In this document: piece by piece, positions 18,279 through 27,534 of the stretch
How positions within the stretch are numbered: the stretch's first letter is position 1
Layout of the letters: the number at the start of each line of letters is the position of its first letter
Source: Prasinococcaceae sp. CCMP 1430
Lineage: Eukaryota > Plantae > Prasinodermophyta
Reading direction: 5' to 3'
Assembly: GCA_013416795.1 (NCBI GenBank)
Contig: RQSC01001135.1
Coordinates: 106,410 to 164,600, forward strand
Length of the DNA stretch: 58,191 nt
The notes under the pieces: generated by a model
What the model was told of the DNA's origin: nothing
Database searches by the model: none
Seen by the model: only the letters and a program-made list of their open reading frames with translations
Translations under genes and position numbers: made by a program

Positions 18279-19001
18279 TGCGCCCGCTGCCCTCCCCTTC
18301 CGCCCTCCAGCTCCCCACTCATCCACCCAGCCACCCACCCACAGCGTATGAGCGCTGCCGCGCGATCCGCGCCGCCAAACGCAGCACTCCCGCGCTCGCG
18401 CCGCTGGCGCCGCTGTCGCCCCGCTCGCTCTCATCCCCCTTCCACGCCGGACGCGGTGGCAGCATGCGCTCAACCTGCATCTGGCGCGGCCGCGCCGCGG
18501 AGGCAAAGGCGGCAGCGGGGCGGCGCCGGCGCCGCGGAGCGCGCCTCGCCGCCCGGGGGAACTTTTTGAATTTGTGCGGGAAAATCGCGACCGCGCGGCG
18601 GTGCCGGTGCCGCCGGTGTTGGCAACCGGCGATGAAATTCTTGGCATGAATTAAAACTCATATGTAATCGGCAGAACCTCCGTCGAAAATGGCGGGATGA
18701 CGCACGCGGTTCGTTCGGCGCCGATGTTCCCCCGTGCGCTCGCCCGCACCGCCCGGGGGAGCGGCGGCAGTGCGCGCGCGCGGCGGGCGGGCGCGCGAGA
18801 GAGGGGCGGAGAGGAGGTGAGGAGCGCGCAGGACGGCGTCGGCTCTCGCAGCAGCGCGCGCGCTCGAGCGAGAGCCCCCTTTGTCTTTACGAGCGGAAGC
18901 GTGGGCTGGCGAGTGCGGGCACGGATCTGACGCGCGCTGTTCTGACGCGCGGGCGTGTGCGCCCTCGCGTTGCTGCCGCCTCGAATCCAACTTTGCAGTC
19001 A

Positions 19002-22000
19002 ATGGCGCCCCCCTCGCCGGCGAAGTGGGTGCGCCCCATGTCATCCAAGGCAGCTGCATCGCGCTCCGCAGCTGCCGCGAGCGCCGGCGCGAGCAGCAGC
19101 GGCGGCGAGCTCGCGCTCGAAGGCACCACCCCACCGCACACGAGCGAGCCGGGCCCGCGCGCGCTCGCCACACCCGTGCGCAGCTCGCCGCTCAAGGCTG
19201 GCCCGCCGGGGGCTGGCCTCCAGAGTGCTCAGCCCGCGTCTGAACAGGCGCAGACAAAGACAATCGTGGGGCGGAGACCAGAGGTGAAGCTGGGTGCTGC
19301 GAAGGCGGACGCATCGAGGGGCTCGCGCGTGTCGGCTCACGCCGAGGCGCGGATGGCCATCCTGCGCAAGAGGGAGGAGATGCGCGCGCGCCGAGCGCGC
19401 GAAGCAGAGGAGGAGGCCGCGCGCGCCAAGGCCGCCCGCGATAAGGCGCGCGCCGCTGCCCGAGCTGAGCGCGAGAAGGCCGCGGCCAAGCTCAGGGCGC
19501 TCAGACGCCCGCGAGGCGCCCGCGCGGACACCGACGCCGGCGAGGGCGCAGGCGCAGGCGCTGGTACTTGTGCGATCGAGGGCAATGGGCCGTCTGAAGC
19601 GCAGACGAGTGTGCAGGCGCTCGCTGAGACACAGCAGCGCGTGCTGGGCGCGACGGGGATGTCGCCCGGTCTTTCGCCCGCAGGCAGCGCGTCGGGTGCT
19701 CAAGCAGCGCCTGTGGCGGCATCTCCTTCTCATGACGCGCCCAACGATAGCGACGCGGCACATCAGGCCGAGCTGCAGCTCGCTGCTCGCGACAAGCTGC
19801 TCGCAGCCCTGACGAGCGCGGGCGAGTCCGATGAGGTCGACCCGCAGCGCGACGTTCTACTCGCGGCACGAGTGCTGCTCGCAATGGACTCGCCCGAGCG
19901 TGGTGGTGCCGGCGCTGATATGTCGTCCGCTCTCGAGGAGTCGGTGCTTGCACTGGAGGCCGAAGAGGCTACCATGTTGGAAGCCGACGCGGGTATCGCG
20001 GCTGAGACCGAGGCGCCCGACGAACCCGCCAGCCCAGAGGCGTCACAGTCGCCGCCCATTGAGACGCAGGCGCGCTCGCGCGGCCACTCCAACACTGCCG
20101 AGGCCGAGGCCGGCACCGGCGCTGGCGACCGCACGGGCTTGGAAGAAGAGGCTCCGGCGTCCGTCACAACGGGACTCGCAATGTCGGAGTCAATCGCCGA
20201 ATTCCTTGAGCATGAGGCTCTTGCCGCCTCCGAGGTGCAAATCGCTGAGGCGGCGGCGATGAAGGCTGCTGATTCGGCGGTAGCTTCCATTGAACGTGCG
20301 CGAGCTGCTGCCAGCGGCGAAATGCACAGCGATGTCGAAGGCTCACCAGGGGTCTCCGAAACCCCCGCGACCGCCGCCGAGATTGACGTTGGGGGCAAGA
20401 GTGTCTTGGGAGAAGGCCTGGAGGTGGACAAATCGCACGCAGTCGTTGGCACCGACACGAAGCAATGTGCAGATGCGGTGGCAGGCAGTGACAGTTCGCC
20501 AGCTGCTTTTGCTGCGCCTGTCAACTTCGACGTCGCGGCTGGCGCTGGCGCAGATGGACTGGATCCTCACGCACCTACCGATGCGAGAGCTGCTACGGCC
20601 ACGTCTACTTCGCACGATGCCACAGCGGATGACAGCGTCGCTCGACGCTCGCTGCACACCGTGATGGCAACCGCGGCAAATAAAGGGAGTCCCGCGTCGA
20701 CACCGGCCAGAGTGGAAGGCAACCGCCACACGACTGGAGCGGCATCTTCGTCGGCGAAAGCCTCTCCTCCAATACCGTCTGCTGTGGTTTCGGCGATACC
20801 GCCCGCGCCCGCGCCCGCGCCCGCGCAGCCCGCGCCCGCACCTCCACAGGTGCCGCCTGCGCAGCCCTCACCGCCCCCGCCACAGGCTGTGAGCAGCTTC
20901 GCATCTGTGCTCGCCTACCTCGACCAAGTGGAAGCGGACATTACACCAGACTGGTCGGGGGCCCCGCCTGTCTCGACGTCGGTGCTTTCATCCCCGGCGC
21001 ACTCAACGCTATCTGTAGACACCACCTCGACGTGGGCAACAGGCGCCGCATACCCAGATCCGCCGTCAGGCGCAGGGGCGGGCGCACTGGTTACTGGTGC
21101 AGGGGCTGGCGGGGACGCTGCTGGCTACGCAGCTGTTGCCTACGGCAGCCTTCGTGGCAAAGTCAAAAGCCTTCGTGCCGCGCTGGATGCTTCGCGCTCG
21201 CGCGTATCACAGCTCGAGGCTGCAGCGCGTGATCAGCGCGCCAAGCACGCCCACGAGCTCGAACAAGTCCGATTCGAGGCCGAGATGGCCGCAGAGGCGG
21301 TGCGTACCGCGGCGGACGAGGCAAACGCGCGTAGCGTCGCCTTCATGGACAGGCTGCTCGCGGACAAGGATGCTCTCAGCGCCAGATGTGACAGCCTAGT
21401 GGCCGCTGCCGAGGAGATTGAGGCGGCGCACGCCCGCGCGACGGACGAGATGCGCGCATCGTGGCAGGGCGAATTGAAACGCCACCGCGATTCATGGGCT
21501 GCGGCCGAGCGCGTCAAGCGCGAGGCGTGGGAGTCGGACAAGGCCAGAGAGATCAAAGAGCTCACTATCAAGGTTAGCCAGCGCTCGCCAATTGGATCGC
21601 TTCGCACTAGCGCGCCGCGCCCCATTCACTCGCGGGCGCTCGCACGCTGACCCTATTGCCGCAACGTCTGGCGCAGGGCCTTGAGCCTGAAGTCCAGCGC
21701 CTGGTGGCCAAGCACAAAGCCGATGTGCGTCGTGCAGAGGTCCGCGCGCGTGAGGCCGCGCAGGCGCAGCTCGACGCGCAAGCTGTCGAACACGAGAGTT
21801 ACGTGCGACAGCTGCGCGAGCGCCTCGTGCGCGAACGAGACGATTTGCTGGAAAAAGAGCGCGCCGGGGCCGCTGAGAGACTGCGTGACGCCACCGCGCG
21901 CGCGGAGCATGCTGCTGAGGTGGCGCGTCAGCGCTTGCGCTCTGAGTTCGAAGCCAGACTCGATGAGGCGACGAGTGACGCTCGCGAGGCCAGGCGGGGT

Positions 22001-22902
22001 GTGGCCGATGCGGTAAAGCGCTCGGAATCTGAGGCCGAGCGGCGTGCGGTGGCTTTGGAAGCCGACGCGCGCGAGCGTGTGAGCGCTGCAGAGCGTGCAC
22101 ACGAGGCTGCGCGGGCAGCTTGGGAGAGGGAGACTGAGCAACGCATAGCCGAGGCGATCAGGTACGACGCGCACACGATGCCAAGGCCTCGGCGCATCTT
22201 TCTGGCTGGGTTTGCTCCCTGCATTCCGCTCCGCGTTCCTCTCCCTCTGACGCTCACTCCTTGACACAACGCGGCGCCACGCGCTGGAACGCGCGCACAC
22301 GTGTGCGCATCCCGTCGGGCGCGCATCGCAGCGAACGCGAGGCGAGCATCCGCTCCGTGTGCGAGGCGGAGCGCGACGCGCAGCTTGAGATGGTCGTTCG
22401 CCGCCTCGGTGAGGAGAGCGAGAGCGTTGCTGCCGCGGCGGCCGCAGGTGAGCGCTTGACCGCGCGCGAGCAGGTCGCCAAGGCGCGCCAAGAGGCATCC
22501 GAATCGGTGGCTCGCTTTCGTGACGAAGCCGAAGCGCGCGCGCGCGCGGAGGCCCGCGCGGAGAGCGCTGCCGCCGAGTGCAAGCGCCTCAGCGCTGCGA
22601 TGGCAGCGCTCGAGGGGCAGTCCGAGGCGGCTCGCGCGGAGGCGGCGCTCATCGACCGACGGAGGGACGCTGCTCTGCGCGACGCAGAAGCGCGCGCAAG
22701 CGACGCGGAGGAGCGGGCGCTGCGAGCGAACCGGGCGTCTGCTGCTGCGCAGGAGGCTGCGGTGGCCGAAGCAGCGGCGGTCGACGCACGCGTGCGCGCG
22801 GTGCTGGCGCAACGCGACGCCGCCATCCGGCAGCTCGCAGACGAGCTCGAGGCGGTGCGCGCGCAGACGGCCGAACTGCAACGGGAGGTGGCACATGAGT
22901 AG
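19002..22902 (+). CDS. CEP131: Centrosomal protein CEP131/AZI1; exons 19002..21572, 21677..22161, 22332..22902
   Basis: FMDRLLADKDALSARC; WAAAERVKREAWESDKAREIKELTIK/GLEPEVQRLVAKHK; AERDAQLEMVVRRL. Long low-complexity N-terminal half. Both introns restore the frame. Confidence 0.9.
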
Positions 22903-23217
22903 TCGCCGTGCGCCCCTCCCCCAACCCCACCCCACCCCAAGGTGCCCTCCCATATCAGTGCATTGTTTCACGCGCCTCTCGCACCGTCCAGCCCGCACGC
23001 TCGCCCGCCGCGAGCCGAGGCGCGCGCCGCCGCGCCCCCTCCGCGCGAGCGCGCTCCAGCCAGAGGCCGGCGGCGGCGNNNNNNNNNNNGCCGCGGGCGC
23101 AAGGCAAGAGCGGGGAGGGGGGGGGCGCCGGGGCGGCTCGGGCGCGCACCCGCGCGCGCGGGTGCGCGGGTGCGTGCGCCCGCGCGCTGGGGTTGGCCAG
23201 CGTGGTTCGCCTTCGTC

Positions 23218-26200
23218 ATGGTCACCTCTGATGCGGACGTGCGCATCGAGGTGGGCGCGCTGCCGACGCCTGCGGAAGGGGGCGAGCAGCCGTGCACGCT
23301 CTCGCTGGAGCACGCGTCGTACCGCGCCCTGGAGGTCGATGGCCTCGTTCACATCAACGTCTTGCGCTCCGGCAGCGATGCAAACGCGTGCTCCGTGCGC
23401 GTGCGCACGCGCGACGGCAGCGCGCGCGGAGGTGTGCACTACGTGAAGATGGACGAGACAGTCACGTTCGAGCCTGGTGAGAAGAGCAAATCCGTGACCG
23501 CGTACATCTTCGACTCGCCCGACCAGTCGTCATACGTATTCAGTGTGGTGCTCTCCGAGGCGCGCGCGCTCGCGGGCAAGCGGCAGCGCCGCTCCTCTGC
23601 CCGCACATTCGAGGTGGCGATCGGCGCCACGAGTGAGGCGACCGTCGTCATCGTCGACACGGACCAGAAGACACTGCCCAAAACGCTGCTGAACAGCGGC
23701 GCCTTCCAGGTAATCGTCTTCCTCTCGACGGCCTTCGCGCTCTTCGGCAACGACATCTCAGCGGTGTACGGCGGGCCCAAGACCGACCCTATTATTGACG
23801 CCATCACTGCACTCAACATCGCAGTGTTCTCCCTGGAGCTCGTGCTGATGGCCATCGTCAAAGGTAAAGCGTATGTGCCCTCGATCCAGCTGGGCATGGA
23901 CTTGCTGGCCATCTTCGGGCTGGTAGCGCTCCTGCCGTCGTTTGCGCGCGCGCTGGGCAGCGGCGCGGGCATTGGCGTGCTCGCGCGTGCGGGACGCGCT
24001 GCACGCGTGGCGGCCAAGGCCGGGCGCACCATCAAGGTGCCCCAACTTCTGGGGAAGATTATCCACTTTGCTGCTGTCGCAGCTGCGTGGGTGCAGTCTA
24101 AGAAGAAGAAGAGGAAGGCCGAGGACGACGAATTCGGGGACGGCGAGGACGCGGGGGACAAGGGCGCCGGGAAGATCGGCGCCGGCGATGGCAACGGTGC
24201 CGATGATGGCTACGATGGAAGCGAAGGGCACGCTGAGGAGGGTGCCACCGATCCAAGGGCTCCCACGCTCCTGGAGTCGATGAGCGCGCGCAGCCTCGGC
24301 CGCGTCCAAGAGGAAGTGAAGGAGGCGACGGCGGAGACGGCCGATGGCGCCATGGTCGACAATGCCTCTCGCGCGGGGAAAATAGGCGCCACGGTCCTGG
24401 ACCTTCTCACATCCAAGGTCATCCTCATGATGCTGATGCTGCTCGTGTGCGCTGAGTTCATCACTGTGATTGAGGTGCCCGCGCAGAAGGAGCTGGGCCT
24501 GGATGTGCTCGAGGCGCTCGGGCCCAGCGCGGCTGATGTCGCTGTTCCAACCGCCGCCTTCGAGGACGTGCTTGCAATTTTCAAGGCCTCCGCCGCCAGC
24601 TTGCACGAGGATGGCAAGGGAGACGAAGCACCGGCCACTGCTTACAATGTGCGCGAGCCGTTGCTGTACCTTCGCATCAATGGCATCGAGTACAACGACG
24701 ATCTCAACGCGCAGCGGGTCACAAGCCTCCGCTCGATGGAAATGCGTGCGGTGTCGAGCGAAGGATGCAGCTTCGACCCCTTCGATGTGTACAGCGATCT
24801 CGTCGAGCCTGTTGGCGCCAGCGGTCCGGGCGCGTCGCAGTGCCCGTCCGCCGCCGTGTTCGACAACTCGTCCTTCTCTCGAGCGGATGCTGCTGCTTCA
24901 ATGGGTCTCACGTGTGCCATCGTGGTAATTTTGTCCATTGGGATGGGTCTCATGGCCGTTGACTTCCGGGAGAGGATGGGCGAGCCCCTTGCGCATATGA
25001 TGGACACCATGGGAGCCGTCAAGGCGCTCGTGAGCGGCACCCCCTTTGGCGCGGGCGGTGCCATCGAGGAAGAAGACGACGAGGAAGACGACGACGACGA
25101 CAGCGACCCGTCCGACTCTGGCGGCGACGACCCGAGCGAATCTGGCGATGCGGCTGAGGTCGCACAGGGCCGCAGCAAGCGTGCGCGAGCCACGCTGCGG
25201 CGCCTGCGCAACATCGTGGGCACCCCGAAGTCGTTTAGTGCGGGCGTTGTCAACGTCCACAAAACGTACGAGAGGATCTACTCGTCGATGTTGGGGCTGA
25301 CCAAAGACGTAGAGAATGCCTTCGGCGTGCGCATGACAGCCGTCCGGAACCGTCTCATCATGCGCAACCAGGAGCTGGGGAACGTATTCACCTCGCTTGA
25401 GGACGCCGCGCGCCAGGTTGCATCGGGCGAGATCCGGCTGGTTGACATGAGCGAATTCGCCGTCATGACCTCGCGCGCGGGACAGGGCGTCGTTGAGGAC
25501 GCGATGCTGGCCGTCAACAAAGATGAGCCAAAGGTGAGTGGGGCGTGCGAATGTGAGCGCGCTTGCGCTTGCGCAGGTGGGCGCGGTCATATGCGCCGTC
25601 TCTCCGTGTCTCGCGCTCGCAGGGTGCTCACGCATGCTCGCGCTCGCACGCGCCTTTGCTCTCGCGATCTCAGCCCGATTCGGAGGCGGATGCATCAGCT
25701 GTCTCCGCCGGAGCGTCCTCCATGTCTGAGTCTGCTCGCCCAAGCGCCTTGCGCCGCGTCGAGTCGGTCACCCGTGTCCTGGAAGCTCACTCAGAGGCGT
25801 ACCTGTCGAAGCTTGAGGATGCGATGGCAGAGCGTGGTGTTGCTGTGCCTCCGAGCGGGGTGACGCTCGGCGCGGCCCTGGGCTTCGCTGAAAGCGCGGC
25901 GGTGGATGCAGCGGCCAGCACGATCCGCTCTGTGGCCGCGCGTCTGTCGGAAAGCGGTGTGGTTGGAGATGCTTTCAAGCGCGCCGCTCAAAAGCATGCG
26001 TCGGCCAGCGGCGATGGGACGGGCCCCAGGGCACCGAGTGCGGCCGAGGCGACGTCGCTGTCAAGCGACTCGATTGACACGCTGGACTCGCGCGTCGCAT
26101 CGCTCGTGGCCGTGCTCGCATCGGAGAAGATCGAGTCGCTGGGCTTCTCCGTGCCAGATGACATGCCACTACTCGAGTCGGCAGACCAGCAGCAGGACGT

Positions 26201-27054
26201 GCTCGGCGCGCGCCTCCGAGGGACGCTTCTGCGTCTCGAGAATGCCTTCGTGCACAACTCGCTCATCGCTCTCGAGGAGAAAGGGGTGTGTCTCCCGCGC
26301 GAGGACGTGCTGAGGGAGGATCCGTCCGCTGCGCCGTGCATGTCTATGCGGGGATTGAAGGCCGCGACGGAGCAGTCGTTGGTGGCACTCGCCAAGCAGG
26401 CGCTCGAGGCCTCAGGTCCCGCTGAGGGTGCGCGCAGCCTGCAGGGCATGTCTCAAAACGACCTGCTGCGTGCCGCGGCGGACGCACTCGTGCAGGCGGC
26501 GCTTGATGGCGGCGATGCATTCGCCTCTCTGCCGCCGGTCGTGAAGCACGCTGCCAAGGCCGGCGGCGAGGCGCTTCTGCGTGCAGCCGCGTCTCCCGAG
26601 GGCGTAGAAACGTTCTTGGCGACGGTCGGCCCATCCGATCTCAGCTCGCTGCTCGAGATGGCGGTGCAAAAGAGCAAGGCAGCCGATGGAGAAGAGGACG
26701 ACGATGCTCAGGCGCACGCGACGGAACTGGTGCGTGCGCGATGCGTGCGCGCGCGGCCGCGCGAGAGGGGGCGTCGACGCGATGGCGTCGCTCGCTCGCT
26801 GCGGCTGACCCCGCTACCAATCGCTTTCGCGCGCACAGGCACTCGACCACATGTCTTTCATCGCCGAGGCTGCCAAGGCCCTGGCGGGCGCCGAAGGGGG
26901 CGGGCGGGTCGCCGCCGCGATTTCGCTGGTGTTGAGCGCGGCCGAGCGAGGTCTCGTTCCCGAGGGCGCGCTCGGTACGATCGATTTGAGACTGCTGCGG
27001 CTGGTGCGCGGCGCGGCCGGCACAGGGCCCACGGAACGCTCCGGCTCGTCGTAG
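23218..27054 (+). CDS. Calx-beta domain + 6-TM voltage-sensor/ion-channel module of the protist tmAC type + unrecognised C-terminal helical region (no cyclase motif); exons 23218..25533, 25674..26729, 26839..27054
   Basis: Calx-beta: SLEHASYRALE..VHINVLRSG..SVRVRTRDGSA..YVKMDETVTFEPGEKSKSVT..ATVVIVD. S1-S3 helices; S4 RAGRAARVAAKAGRTIK; S5 TSKVILMMLMLL; loop LLYLRING; S6 AVFD..TCAIVVILSIGM..EPLAHM. Both introns are phase 0 GT-AG. Confidence 0.82.
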
Positions 27055-27534
27055 ACCCCGTCCCGATGCGACCCGCGCGGCAGCTTGCAGCCCGGTTCGT
27101 AGCCTTCCCGAACCGGGGATTTTAAATCTATGTAATTCCCTGTCCCAGGCCCCTTCACGGGTCTGACCGCGAAAATTACCCCAAATACCAGTACAGGTAT
27201 TGAGCAGAACCGGGAGAAAGAACACCAATGCCCCCCACCCGGAACTCTTTTGAGGTCATTCCTTTCAGGGTTCGCGTAGCGGCGCCTCCCGCGCGCGCGC
27301 GCCCCACGGCTGCGCGCGCGCGCGCTTTCGCACGCGCGTTCGAACCGCGCATGGGGGGGGGGGTGCGGGCACACTGCGCGCGGCGGGCGCTGCGGAGGGG
27401 AGGGCGAGAGGGCGAGAGGCGGCGCTCGTAGAAGCGGCGCCGGCGGGCGGCTCGCGCGTCGGAAGGGTGAGAGGGAGGGGGAGGGGAGCGCGAGAGGGAG
27501 GGCGAGGGGAAGGGAGGGGTGGGCGGCGGCGACG

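Follow-up and report, generated by a model that had tools for sequence, protein, structure and literature searches.

What is the output of a membrane protein that joins a Calx-beta domain to a voltage-sensing module of the protist channel-cyclase type and carries no enzyme? The question is raised by a gene at positions 23218-27054 on the plus strand of the window, by which we mean the whole stretch of 58,191 nucleotides (nt) analyzed here from Prasinococcaceae sp. CCMP 1430 (contig RQSC01001135.1, assembly GCA_013416795.1, positions 106,410 to 164,600 of the forward strand), a eukaryotic sequence with a G+C content of about 69%. A reading of the letters alone, hereafter the sequence-only reading, had described the product as a Calx-beta domain and a six-transmembrane module in which the adenylyl cyclase was replaced by a new effector or scaffold domain. 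The best overall explanation, to which we give an even chance of being right in all its parts, is that the product, of about 1,200 amino acids (aa), spans the membrane several times, belongs to a clade of Calx-beta proteins and works by the sensor-scaffold mechanism proposed below.

The gene consists of three exons, with intron 1 being predicted. On the plus strand, an open reading frame (ORF) of 973 aa (22942-25863) is followed by an ORF of 520 aa in another frame (25563-27125). Exon 1 (23218..25533, 772 aa), taken from the ORF translation, opens with a putative start codon, the earliest ATG in the coding-like sequence, and encodes the Calx-beta domain, the six-transmembrane (6-TM) module and a helical module after S6. 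Intron 1 (25534..25622, 89 nt, GTGAGT...CAG) was predicted from the frame change between the two ORFs by enumeration of in-frame splice pairs. It has a consensus donor (AAG/GTGAGT at 25534), and in-frame acceptors follow pyrimidine-rich tracts at 25622 and 25673. The nearer acceptor yields a predicted product of about 1,212 aa, and the alternative acceptor gives an intron of 140 nt and a product of 1,195 aa, which is 17 aa shorter. Exon 2 (25623..26729, 369 aa) encodes an Ala/Ser/Leu-rich helical tail and is covered in parts by RNA contigs, and exon 3 (26839..27054), which adds 71 aa and the stop codon at 27052-27054, is linked to it by spliced RNA contigs. The G+C content by codon position is coding-like in all three exons, with values of 0.66/0.46/0.80 at positions 1/2/3 in exon 1. 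Contigs from two ocean metatranscriptomes (runs X2 and X3) confirmed the splicing of intron 2 (26730..26838, 109 nt, GTGCGT...CAG), their shorter flank being 57-58 nt. The gene is transcribed in several ocean metatranscriptomes, at low RNA depth.

We searched 1.84 billion representative sequences exhaustively with HMMER, using aa 150-772 of the predicted protein as the query, and recovered 252 relatives at E≤1e-3, which places the features in common far beyond chance. Domains were tallied with local profiles in 161 proteins, made up of the 150 listed of the 252 matches and of cluster members. Among these matches listed, a voltage sensor was found in 156 of the 161 proteins, the S5-S6 module in 119, a class III cyclase (consensus FGFCDIRxFT) in 58, a phosphodiesterase in 16 and a Calx-beta domain in 14. 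The cyclase and phosphodiesterase domains were confirmed by Pfam, and proteins of several dinoflagellates and of the ciliate Blepharisma were among the cyclase-bearing relatives. In the ESM Atlas, a ciliate guanylate-cyclase cluster was closest in shape (402 residues, root-mean-square deviation (rmsd) 5.2 Å), and the top AlphaFold DB cluster, which corresponds to aa 153-605, is named "cation channel family protein". In view of the cyclase-bearing relatives and these two matches, the membrane module is homologous to that of the protist channel-cyclases, as had been proposed.

The best HMMER matches contain a Calx-beta domain, the sensor, S5-S6 and a long tail, and are without an enzyme domain. 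Pfam identified Calx-beta and Ion_trans without a cyclase in P0002, P0003, P0005 and P0006, and Calx-beta alone in P0008, P0038 and P0066. The named members of this group are two proteins from Cymbomonas tetramitiformis and one from Spirogloea muscicola, and all carry automatic names only. We inferred a maximum likelihood tree of the membrane module from 88 rows in a quick IQ-TREE search; it is unrooted and has several long branches. Nine Calx-bearing rows and one other row formed a branch with a Shimodaira-Hasegawa-like approximate likelihood ratio test (SH-aLRT) support of 99, situated in an unresolved polytomy with cyclase-, phosphodiesterase-, RGS- and RhoGEF-linked modules. As judged from the sequences, the Calx-beta/voltage-sensor proteins are a separate conserved clade inside a larger protist superfamily. 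The tree being unrooted and unresolved, the direction of change cannot be read from it, and the notion that a cyclase was "replaced" is not supported. Our search of the full-text literature retrieved no paper on a protein in which Calx-beta and a voltage sensor are combined. The protein is not a one-off, as it belongs to a conserved clade.

Seven relatives share the layout of the window protein from the Calx-beta domain through the helical module after S6: KAK3233414.1 (P0151) and CYMTET_41837 (P0170) from Cymbomonas, P0038 from Spirogloea, and P0005, P0008, P0152 and P0171 from MMETSP/ENA. They are 28-34% identical to the window protein over the membrane part, have no enzyme domain and contain co-linear blocks in their tails. 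The tails of these relatives exceed that of the window protein 2-4-fold in length and are mostly unalignable, and some of the seven keep full DDD/DDD motifs in the Calx-beta domain. P0171 could be aligned over aa 60-745 (E 3e-39).

The Calx-beta domain (aa 24-149, 23287..23664) was delimited with Pfam, Foldseek and VIA-align. It matches PF03160 at E 3.9e-13 (49.9 bits, as compared to a cut-off of 27) over profile positions 4-119 of 119, and a phmmer search of the PDB with this part matched NCX1 at E 4e-13. The predicted model is a seven-strand sandwich of the CBD1 type, with a TM-score of 0.85-0.89, 27-28% identity and an rmsd of 1.2-2.6 Å to NCX1 CBD1 (2dpk/3gin) in Foldseek, and a Z-score of 19.1 in VIA-align. 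The placement of a Calx-beta domain before S1 in the sequence-only reading is thereby borne out. No signal peptide was found ahead of the domain, which directly precedes S1, and from the standard topology of voltage sensors it would be located on the cytosolic side, as that reading also had it. We compared the Ca2+-site acids of NCX1 CBD1 (E385, D421, D446-448/E451 and D498-500) and found that E38, D66, one Asp in the E-F loop and a C-terminal D-T-D (DDD in NCX1) are kept. Full DDD motifs at the Ca2+ site are retained in other clade members, such as P0171. The distance from the D-T-D to S1 is about 8-10 residues, and in an alignment of 12 sequences the length of this linker is near-constant in most clade members.

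For the exon 1 product, AlphaFold2 predicted a beta-sandwich ahead of six membrane helices, with a mean predicted local distance difference test (pLDDT) of 73 and a predicted template modeling (pTM) score of 0.69, and the hydropathy of the translation displayed S1-S3, S5 and S6. All motifs quoted previously, namely the S4 array, TSKVILMML (S5), LLYLRING, AVFD, TCAIVVILS (S6) and EPLAHM, were present in the translation of 23218-25533. The voltage-sensor domain S1-S4 covers aa 151-276 (23668..24045), as defined by VIA-align, conserved residues and the AlphaFold2 model, in which the pLDDT is 85-96 in S1-S3 and 73-82 around S4. S4 (aa 253-275) contains the basic residues R258, R261, R264, K268, R271 and K274, and its motif RAGRAARVAAKAGR (aa 258-271) fits the family consensus ARAGRAARxGxRAGR. 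The charge-transfer center, F204-x-x-E207 in S2 and D228 in S3, is conserved in 90% or more of the 45 relatives aligned, and R270 is nearly invariant alongside these residues. The best PDB match to aa 147-276 in VIA-align was the sensor of Ci-VSP (4g7v; Z 12.2 over 130 residues), followed by the sensors of Nav1.7, Kv4, CatSper and KvAP at Z 10-11; sensors of TPC channels were also among the matches. The intact gating charges and charge-transfer center speak in favor of a functional sensor.

The S4-S5 helix and an insert, first Lys-rich and then acidic and Gly-rich, occupy aa 277-388 (24046..24381). Residues 310-382 of the insert, the length of which varies among the relatives, are predicted to be disordered (pLDDT <50). 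S5 (aa 389-420), the outer loop (aa 421-550) and S6 with a cytosolic extension (aa 551-606) follow at 24382..25035, with a pLDDT of mostly 80-91 in the S5 and S6 helices. In the model, the 130-aa loop forms an outer domain of mixed alpha/beta structure that carries the motifs LRxxE and AxFD and two Cys residues that align with Cys residues of P0171, while S6 and its extension contain LVxxPxExM. The channel-cyclases of Paramecium, Tetrahymena and Plasmodium have homologous S1-S4 and S5-loop-S6 segments with the same motifs (the S4 Arg array, TTxKVI, LRxxE, AxFD and LVxxPxExM). They differ in having a class III cyclase and a GFGEAG linker, neither of which is present here, whereas the window protein adds the N-terminal Calx-beta domain and a module with a DVExAF motif and falls into the separate clade.

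This module is found downstream of an acidic low-complexity stretch (aa 607-644, 25036..25149; pLDDT <50 at aa 612-643). It spans aa 645-752 (25150..25473), is helical at aa 671-740 with a block-mean pLDDT of about 72-82, and can be aligned across the Calx clade, in the case of P0171 through aa 745. Within it, the segment KTYERIYSSMLGLTKDVENAFG (aa 682-703 of the exon 1 translation) includes the clade motif D-V-E-N-A-F-G at aa 697-703. The pattern [DEN][IVL]ExAF[GSD] was confined to Calx-clade proteins among the 161 tallied (matches listed), with Asn being allowed at the first position, which takes in P0005 as well. The KTYERIYSS...DVENAFG segment, which had been regarded as the linker that characterizes the channel-cyclases, is on these alignments a signature of the Calx clade instead. 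No profile similarity was detected between the module and the S6-to-cyclase linkers (hhalign 0.2%), which have the consensus ET..LE.T..KIG.LL..GFGEAG. Among the matches listed, GFGEAG was present in 34 of the 58 cyclase relatives and in none of the 17 Calx-clade proteins, and it is also absent from the window protein.

The predicted window protein is without a cyclase domain, as the sequence-only reading had noticed. No class III cyclase domain was identified by Pfam in the window protein, nor by Pfam and local profiles in any Calx-clade relative among the matches listed. A degenerate cyclase in the C-terminus was sought with a profile of 20 cyclase sequences and rejected, as the hhalign probabilities were 0.3% for exon 2 and 0.1% for the region after S6. 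A cyclase exon elsewhere in the window was likewise discarded, the best match in the 58-kb window, translated in six frames and scanned with hmmsearch, having an E-value of about 1.

The tail encoded by exons 2 and 3 has a composition of 20% Ala, 12% Ser and 12% Leu. AlphaFold2 predicted it to be all helix, with no strands, at a pLDDT of 36, and its recognition in the Atlas was low. Pfam gave no match to the exon 2 tail, and phmmer and jackhmmer searches with the window tail and the tails of two relatives returned only the queries or near-identical copies. A hidden Markov model (HMM) of the whole tail from four relatives scored 0.7 bits on the window tail, and 23 of 500 shuffled sequences did as well. 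Only short co-linear blocks were common to the tails. A block HMM was made from four relatives, with the window protein excluded. Block 1 (aa 839-854, 25821..25868, A-M-A-E-R-G-V-A-V-P-P-S-G-V-T-L) scored 5.6 bits with it, a score reached by none of 1000 shuffles, and is the only block of significance. The evidence for block 4 (aa 994-1007, 26286..26327, V-C-L-P-R-E-D-V-L-R-E-D-P-S) is weak: it is the best match of its block HMM, but an equal or higher score was obtained with 85 of 1000 shuffles. In the relatives, a co-linear LPxxE..DP block is located about 300-380 aa past the DVExAF motif, and a post-hoc regular expression for it gave five matches in the clade, two of which are an identical segment (P0006 and P0170), as compared to 0.42 expected. 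We read the tail as a probably diverged and shortened form of the helical tail of the clade itself rather than a newly acquired effector domain, and the earlier idea of a novel folded effector is not upheld, given the low pLDDT, the absence of homologs other than near-identical copies, and the shortness of the shared blocks.

A pattern of Gly-hydrophobic-x-hydrophobic-Pro after a helix was also observed, three times in the window tail (25750-26330) and four times in the tail of P0151, with 0.3 copies expected. Three copies were matched by 1 of 20,000 shuffles. The pattern was defined post hoc and is enriched only in these two tails, and we assign it low weight.

From these parts, the following mechanism can be proposed. 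S4 would shift with the membrane potential, like other voltage sensors. In NCX1, the Ca2+-binding tip adjoins a C-terminal D-x-D motif, and its CBD1-CBD2 junction is the analogy used here: since a fixed short link joins the Ca2+-site end to S1, binding of Ca2+ at the tip of the Calx-beta domain would stiffen or reposition the S1 junction and thereby bias the sensor. The combined signal would exit through S6 and its conserved cytosolic extension to the DVExAF helical module, and the output would be a change in the protein-protein contacts or the oligomer state of this module and the tail. Such a non-enzymatic Ca2+/voltage sensor-scaffold is the output that we favor, albeit at slightly less than an even chance. 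A broader proposal, which we consider rather unlikely in this complete form, is that the clade represents a new class of dual Ca2+/voltage sensors in which the Calx-beta domain on S1 sets the voltage range, with either non-canonical conduction through S5-S6 or voltage-dependent protein recruitment as the output. The suggestion that the protein may be flagellar found no support. One of the relatives is from Spirogloea, a zygnematophyte, and zygnematophytes lack flagella. Prasinoderma coloniale is also reported to be without flagella (PMC7455551).

The results that weigh against a sensor-scaffold concern the Ion_trans profile, the Ca2+ site, the differences to an environmental variant, intron 1 and the tail. 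The main rival, to which we assign a small but substantial chance, is that the protein itself conducts ions as a channel, with a non-canonical S5-S6 pore that is gated by voltage and tuned by Ca2+ through the Calx-beta domain, functionally like BK or TPC1. It would then be a channel-cyclase without the cyclase, in which the conductance was retained. S5-S6 and its loop motifs have been kept across the superfamily, though a sensor alone could drive an enzyme, as in Ci-VSP; the Calx clade conserves the sensor and the 2-TM part while the tail drifts, and long disordered tails are common in channels. The window protein itself had no match to Ion_trans (PF00520) in Pfam at E≤1, and the relatives match the first half of the profile with 17-41 bits, scores that straddle its cut-off of 25. 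A pore helix or selectivity-filter signature was not found between S5 and S6, and G[FYL]G occurs nowhere in the protein. Channel structures in the PDB matched only over the sensor, with an rmsd of 15-22 Å where the match extended into S5-S6, and no clean match to a pore domain was obtained, a result that does not amount to proof of its absence. The GFGEAG motif, which Weber is said to have described in 2004 as a displaced pore-loop-like element, is missing from 17 of 17 Calx-clade proteins. In favor of conduction, PMC12414865 cites reports of a K+ conductance carried by the Paramecium cyclase of this type (Schultz 1992, Weber 2004).

The E-F loop of the Calx-beta domain reads D-S-P-D-Q-S-S, as compared to D-D-D-I-F-E-E-D in NCX1, and has lost most of its acids. 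With its site thus degenerate, Ca2+ binding may be weak or lost in this protein. This would fit a drifting paralog with little function left, in which the Ca2+ site, degenerate relative to both P0171 and NCX1, and the tail are decaying; the low RNA depth points in the same direction. We compared the gene to a TARA Oceans metagenome scaffold (L001) that is 98% identical and observed 35 non-synonymous and 17 synonymous differences, which give no sign of strong constraint in what is a small sample. A selection estimate from these counts was abandoned, as they are too few to interpret at a divergence of 2%. The scaffold keeps the same ATG and frames, and the only coding indel is an in-frame deletion of 9 nt in exon 3. 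A frame that has stayed open for about 3.6 kb in two variants, environmental and cultured, intact gating charges and charge-transfer center, transcription in several metatranscriptomes and correct splicing of intron 2 make decay a very improbable explanation. The exon chain proposed in the sequence-only reading was confirmed by RNA for intron 2, but intron 1 was seen only unspliced: a contig of run X1 (25224-25666) crosses its donor and the nearer acceptor without a mismatch, and an exon 1-exon 2 junction was not observed in any metatranscriptome contig placed on the window. The tail might therefore derive from a separate transcript, with intron 1 retained or rarely removed, the membrane protein stopping at 25861-25863, and exons 2-3 starting at the in-frame ATG at 25722. 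A word-indexed search with the tail retrieved only copies of 96-98% identity, and the tails are hardly alignable among the relatives, even between the Cymbomonas paralogs. With an unconfident fold, no detectable homologs and hardly any conservation, a specific effector role of the tail is doubtful. Yet the consensus donor has two in-frame acceptors, and read-through would add about 110 residues that are not coding-like and overlap the supposed second gene. Moreover, long tails past the DVExAF module are present in most full-length relatives of the clade, several of them from spliced transcriptomes, block 1 is co-linear with those tails, and pre-mRNA is frequent in assemblies of low depth; we therefore regard two transcripts as improbable, although less so than decay. 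A hidden cyclase, either as a degenerate C-terminal fold or in an exon elsewhere, is close to refuted. The only point for it is that 58 of the 161 proteins (matches listed) carry a cyclase after the same module, and this is set against the negative profile comparisons and window scan, a tail model that is all-helical (at low confidence), the stop codon in an exon 3 that is joined by RNA to exon 2, and the lack of a cyclase in the clade relatives.

The sensor-scaffold reading can be compared to systems of known function. Ci-VSP, which provided the best structural match to aa 147-276, also employs a voltage sensor as its input module without being a classical channel. It has a phosphatase and no S5-S6, whereas two more transmembrane helices and an outer domain are present here, with no catalytic domain. 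The sperm exchanger SLC9C1 (SpSLC9C1) makes the same use of a sensor as input and matched at Z 9.6. CBD1 and CBD2 of NCX1/CALX have the same beta-sandwich, CBD1 being the closest, and likewise act as a cytosolic regulator on a membrane protein, but the domain is single here and not in tandem, is linked to the S1 helix of a voltage sensor and not to an exchanger loop, and has largely lost the acidic E-F loop. BK and TPC1 are functional analogs only. In each, the polypeptide that contains the voltage sensor also carries a cytosolic Ca2+ sensor, but the latter is of the RCK or EF-hand type and the pore domain is canonical, in contrast to a Calx-beta domain and no detected pore domain in the window protein.

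Voltage sensors coupled to outputs other than a pore are rare and informative, the examples being Ci-VSP, Hv1, sperm SLC9C1 and the ciliate channel-cyclases. The sensor and 2-TM module of the ciliate type is a widely reused input module in protists, found with cyclases, phosphodiesterases, RGS and RhoGEF domains. Fusions to RGS were observed in P0087 and P0149 and to RhoGEF-PH in P0112 from Acytostelium, and the module is therefore a general input device that is not tied to cyclic nucleotides. In one conserved branch, in early-diverging green algae, a domain of the Ca2+-sensor type has been added at S1 and there is no enzyme. If Ca2+ at S1 does tune the sensor, a single protein would integrate the two main fast signals of the cell in a new manner, and we know of no studied protein in which Ca2+ at S1 sets the voltage range of a sensor. 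The members without an enzyme would also be the simplest system in which to ask what S5-S6 does in the channel-cyclases; the unresolved role of the membrane domains of cyclases is discussed in PMC12414865. The present value lies in a well-defined family and constructs that can be tested, all functional statements being inference.

A few observations of minor weight were made in addition. PF26726 ("Helical_RasGEFs", Pfam 38) was weakly recorded on P0171 and the nearest Atlas clusters, and no paper naming this family was retrieved from the full-text literature. In P0136, a protein kinase and a weak TIR match are located beside the sensor alone, S5-S6 not being detected.

Depth spikes of 93-128 with many loose ends at 25065-25102 originate from unrelated GAG/GAC-rich (Asp/Glu-coding) contigs that were placed on the acidic low-complexity stretch, and they are not evidence for expression of the gene. 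A 155-nt insertion in scaffold L001 was dismissed as an artefact, since it consists of a 100-N scaffolding gap (1195-1294) with duplicated flanks in the acidic insert. It is due to this gap that P0001 begins inside the gene, and the extended C-terminus of P0001 is read-through of unspliced intron 1.

An assembly gap of 11 N at 23079-23089 is situated about 130 nt upstream of the proposed ATG at 23218, and the 5' end, or a possible upstream exon, is for this reason only partly visible. Further upstream, three successive long ORFs in different frames (18957-22902, plus strand) encode an Ala/Glu/Arg-rich, coiled-coil-like protein and are probably one spliced gene. They end about 316 nt before the ATG, and since the layout of the family puts the Calx-beta domain at the N-terminus, we consider them to belong to a separate gene.

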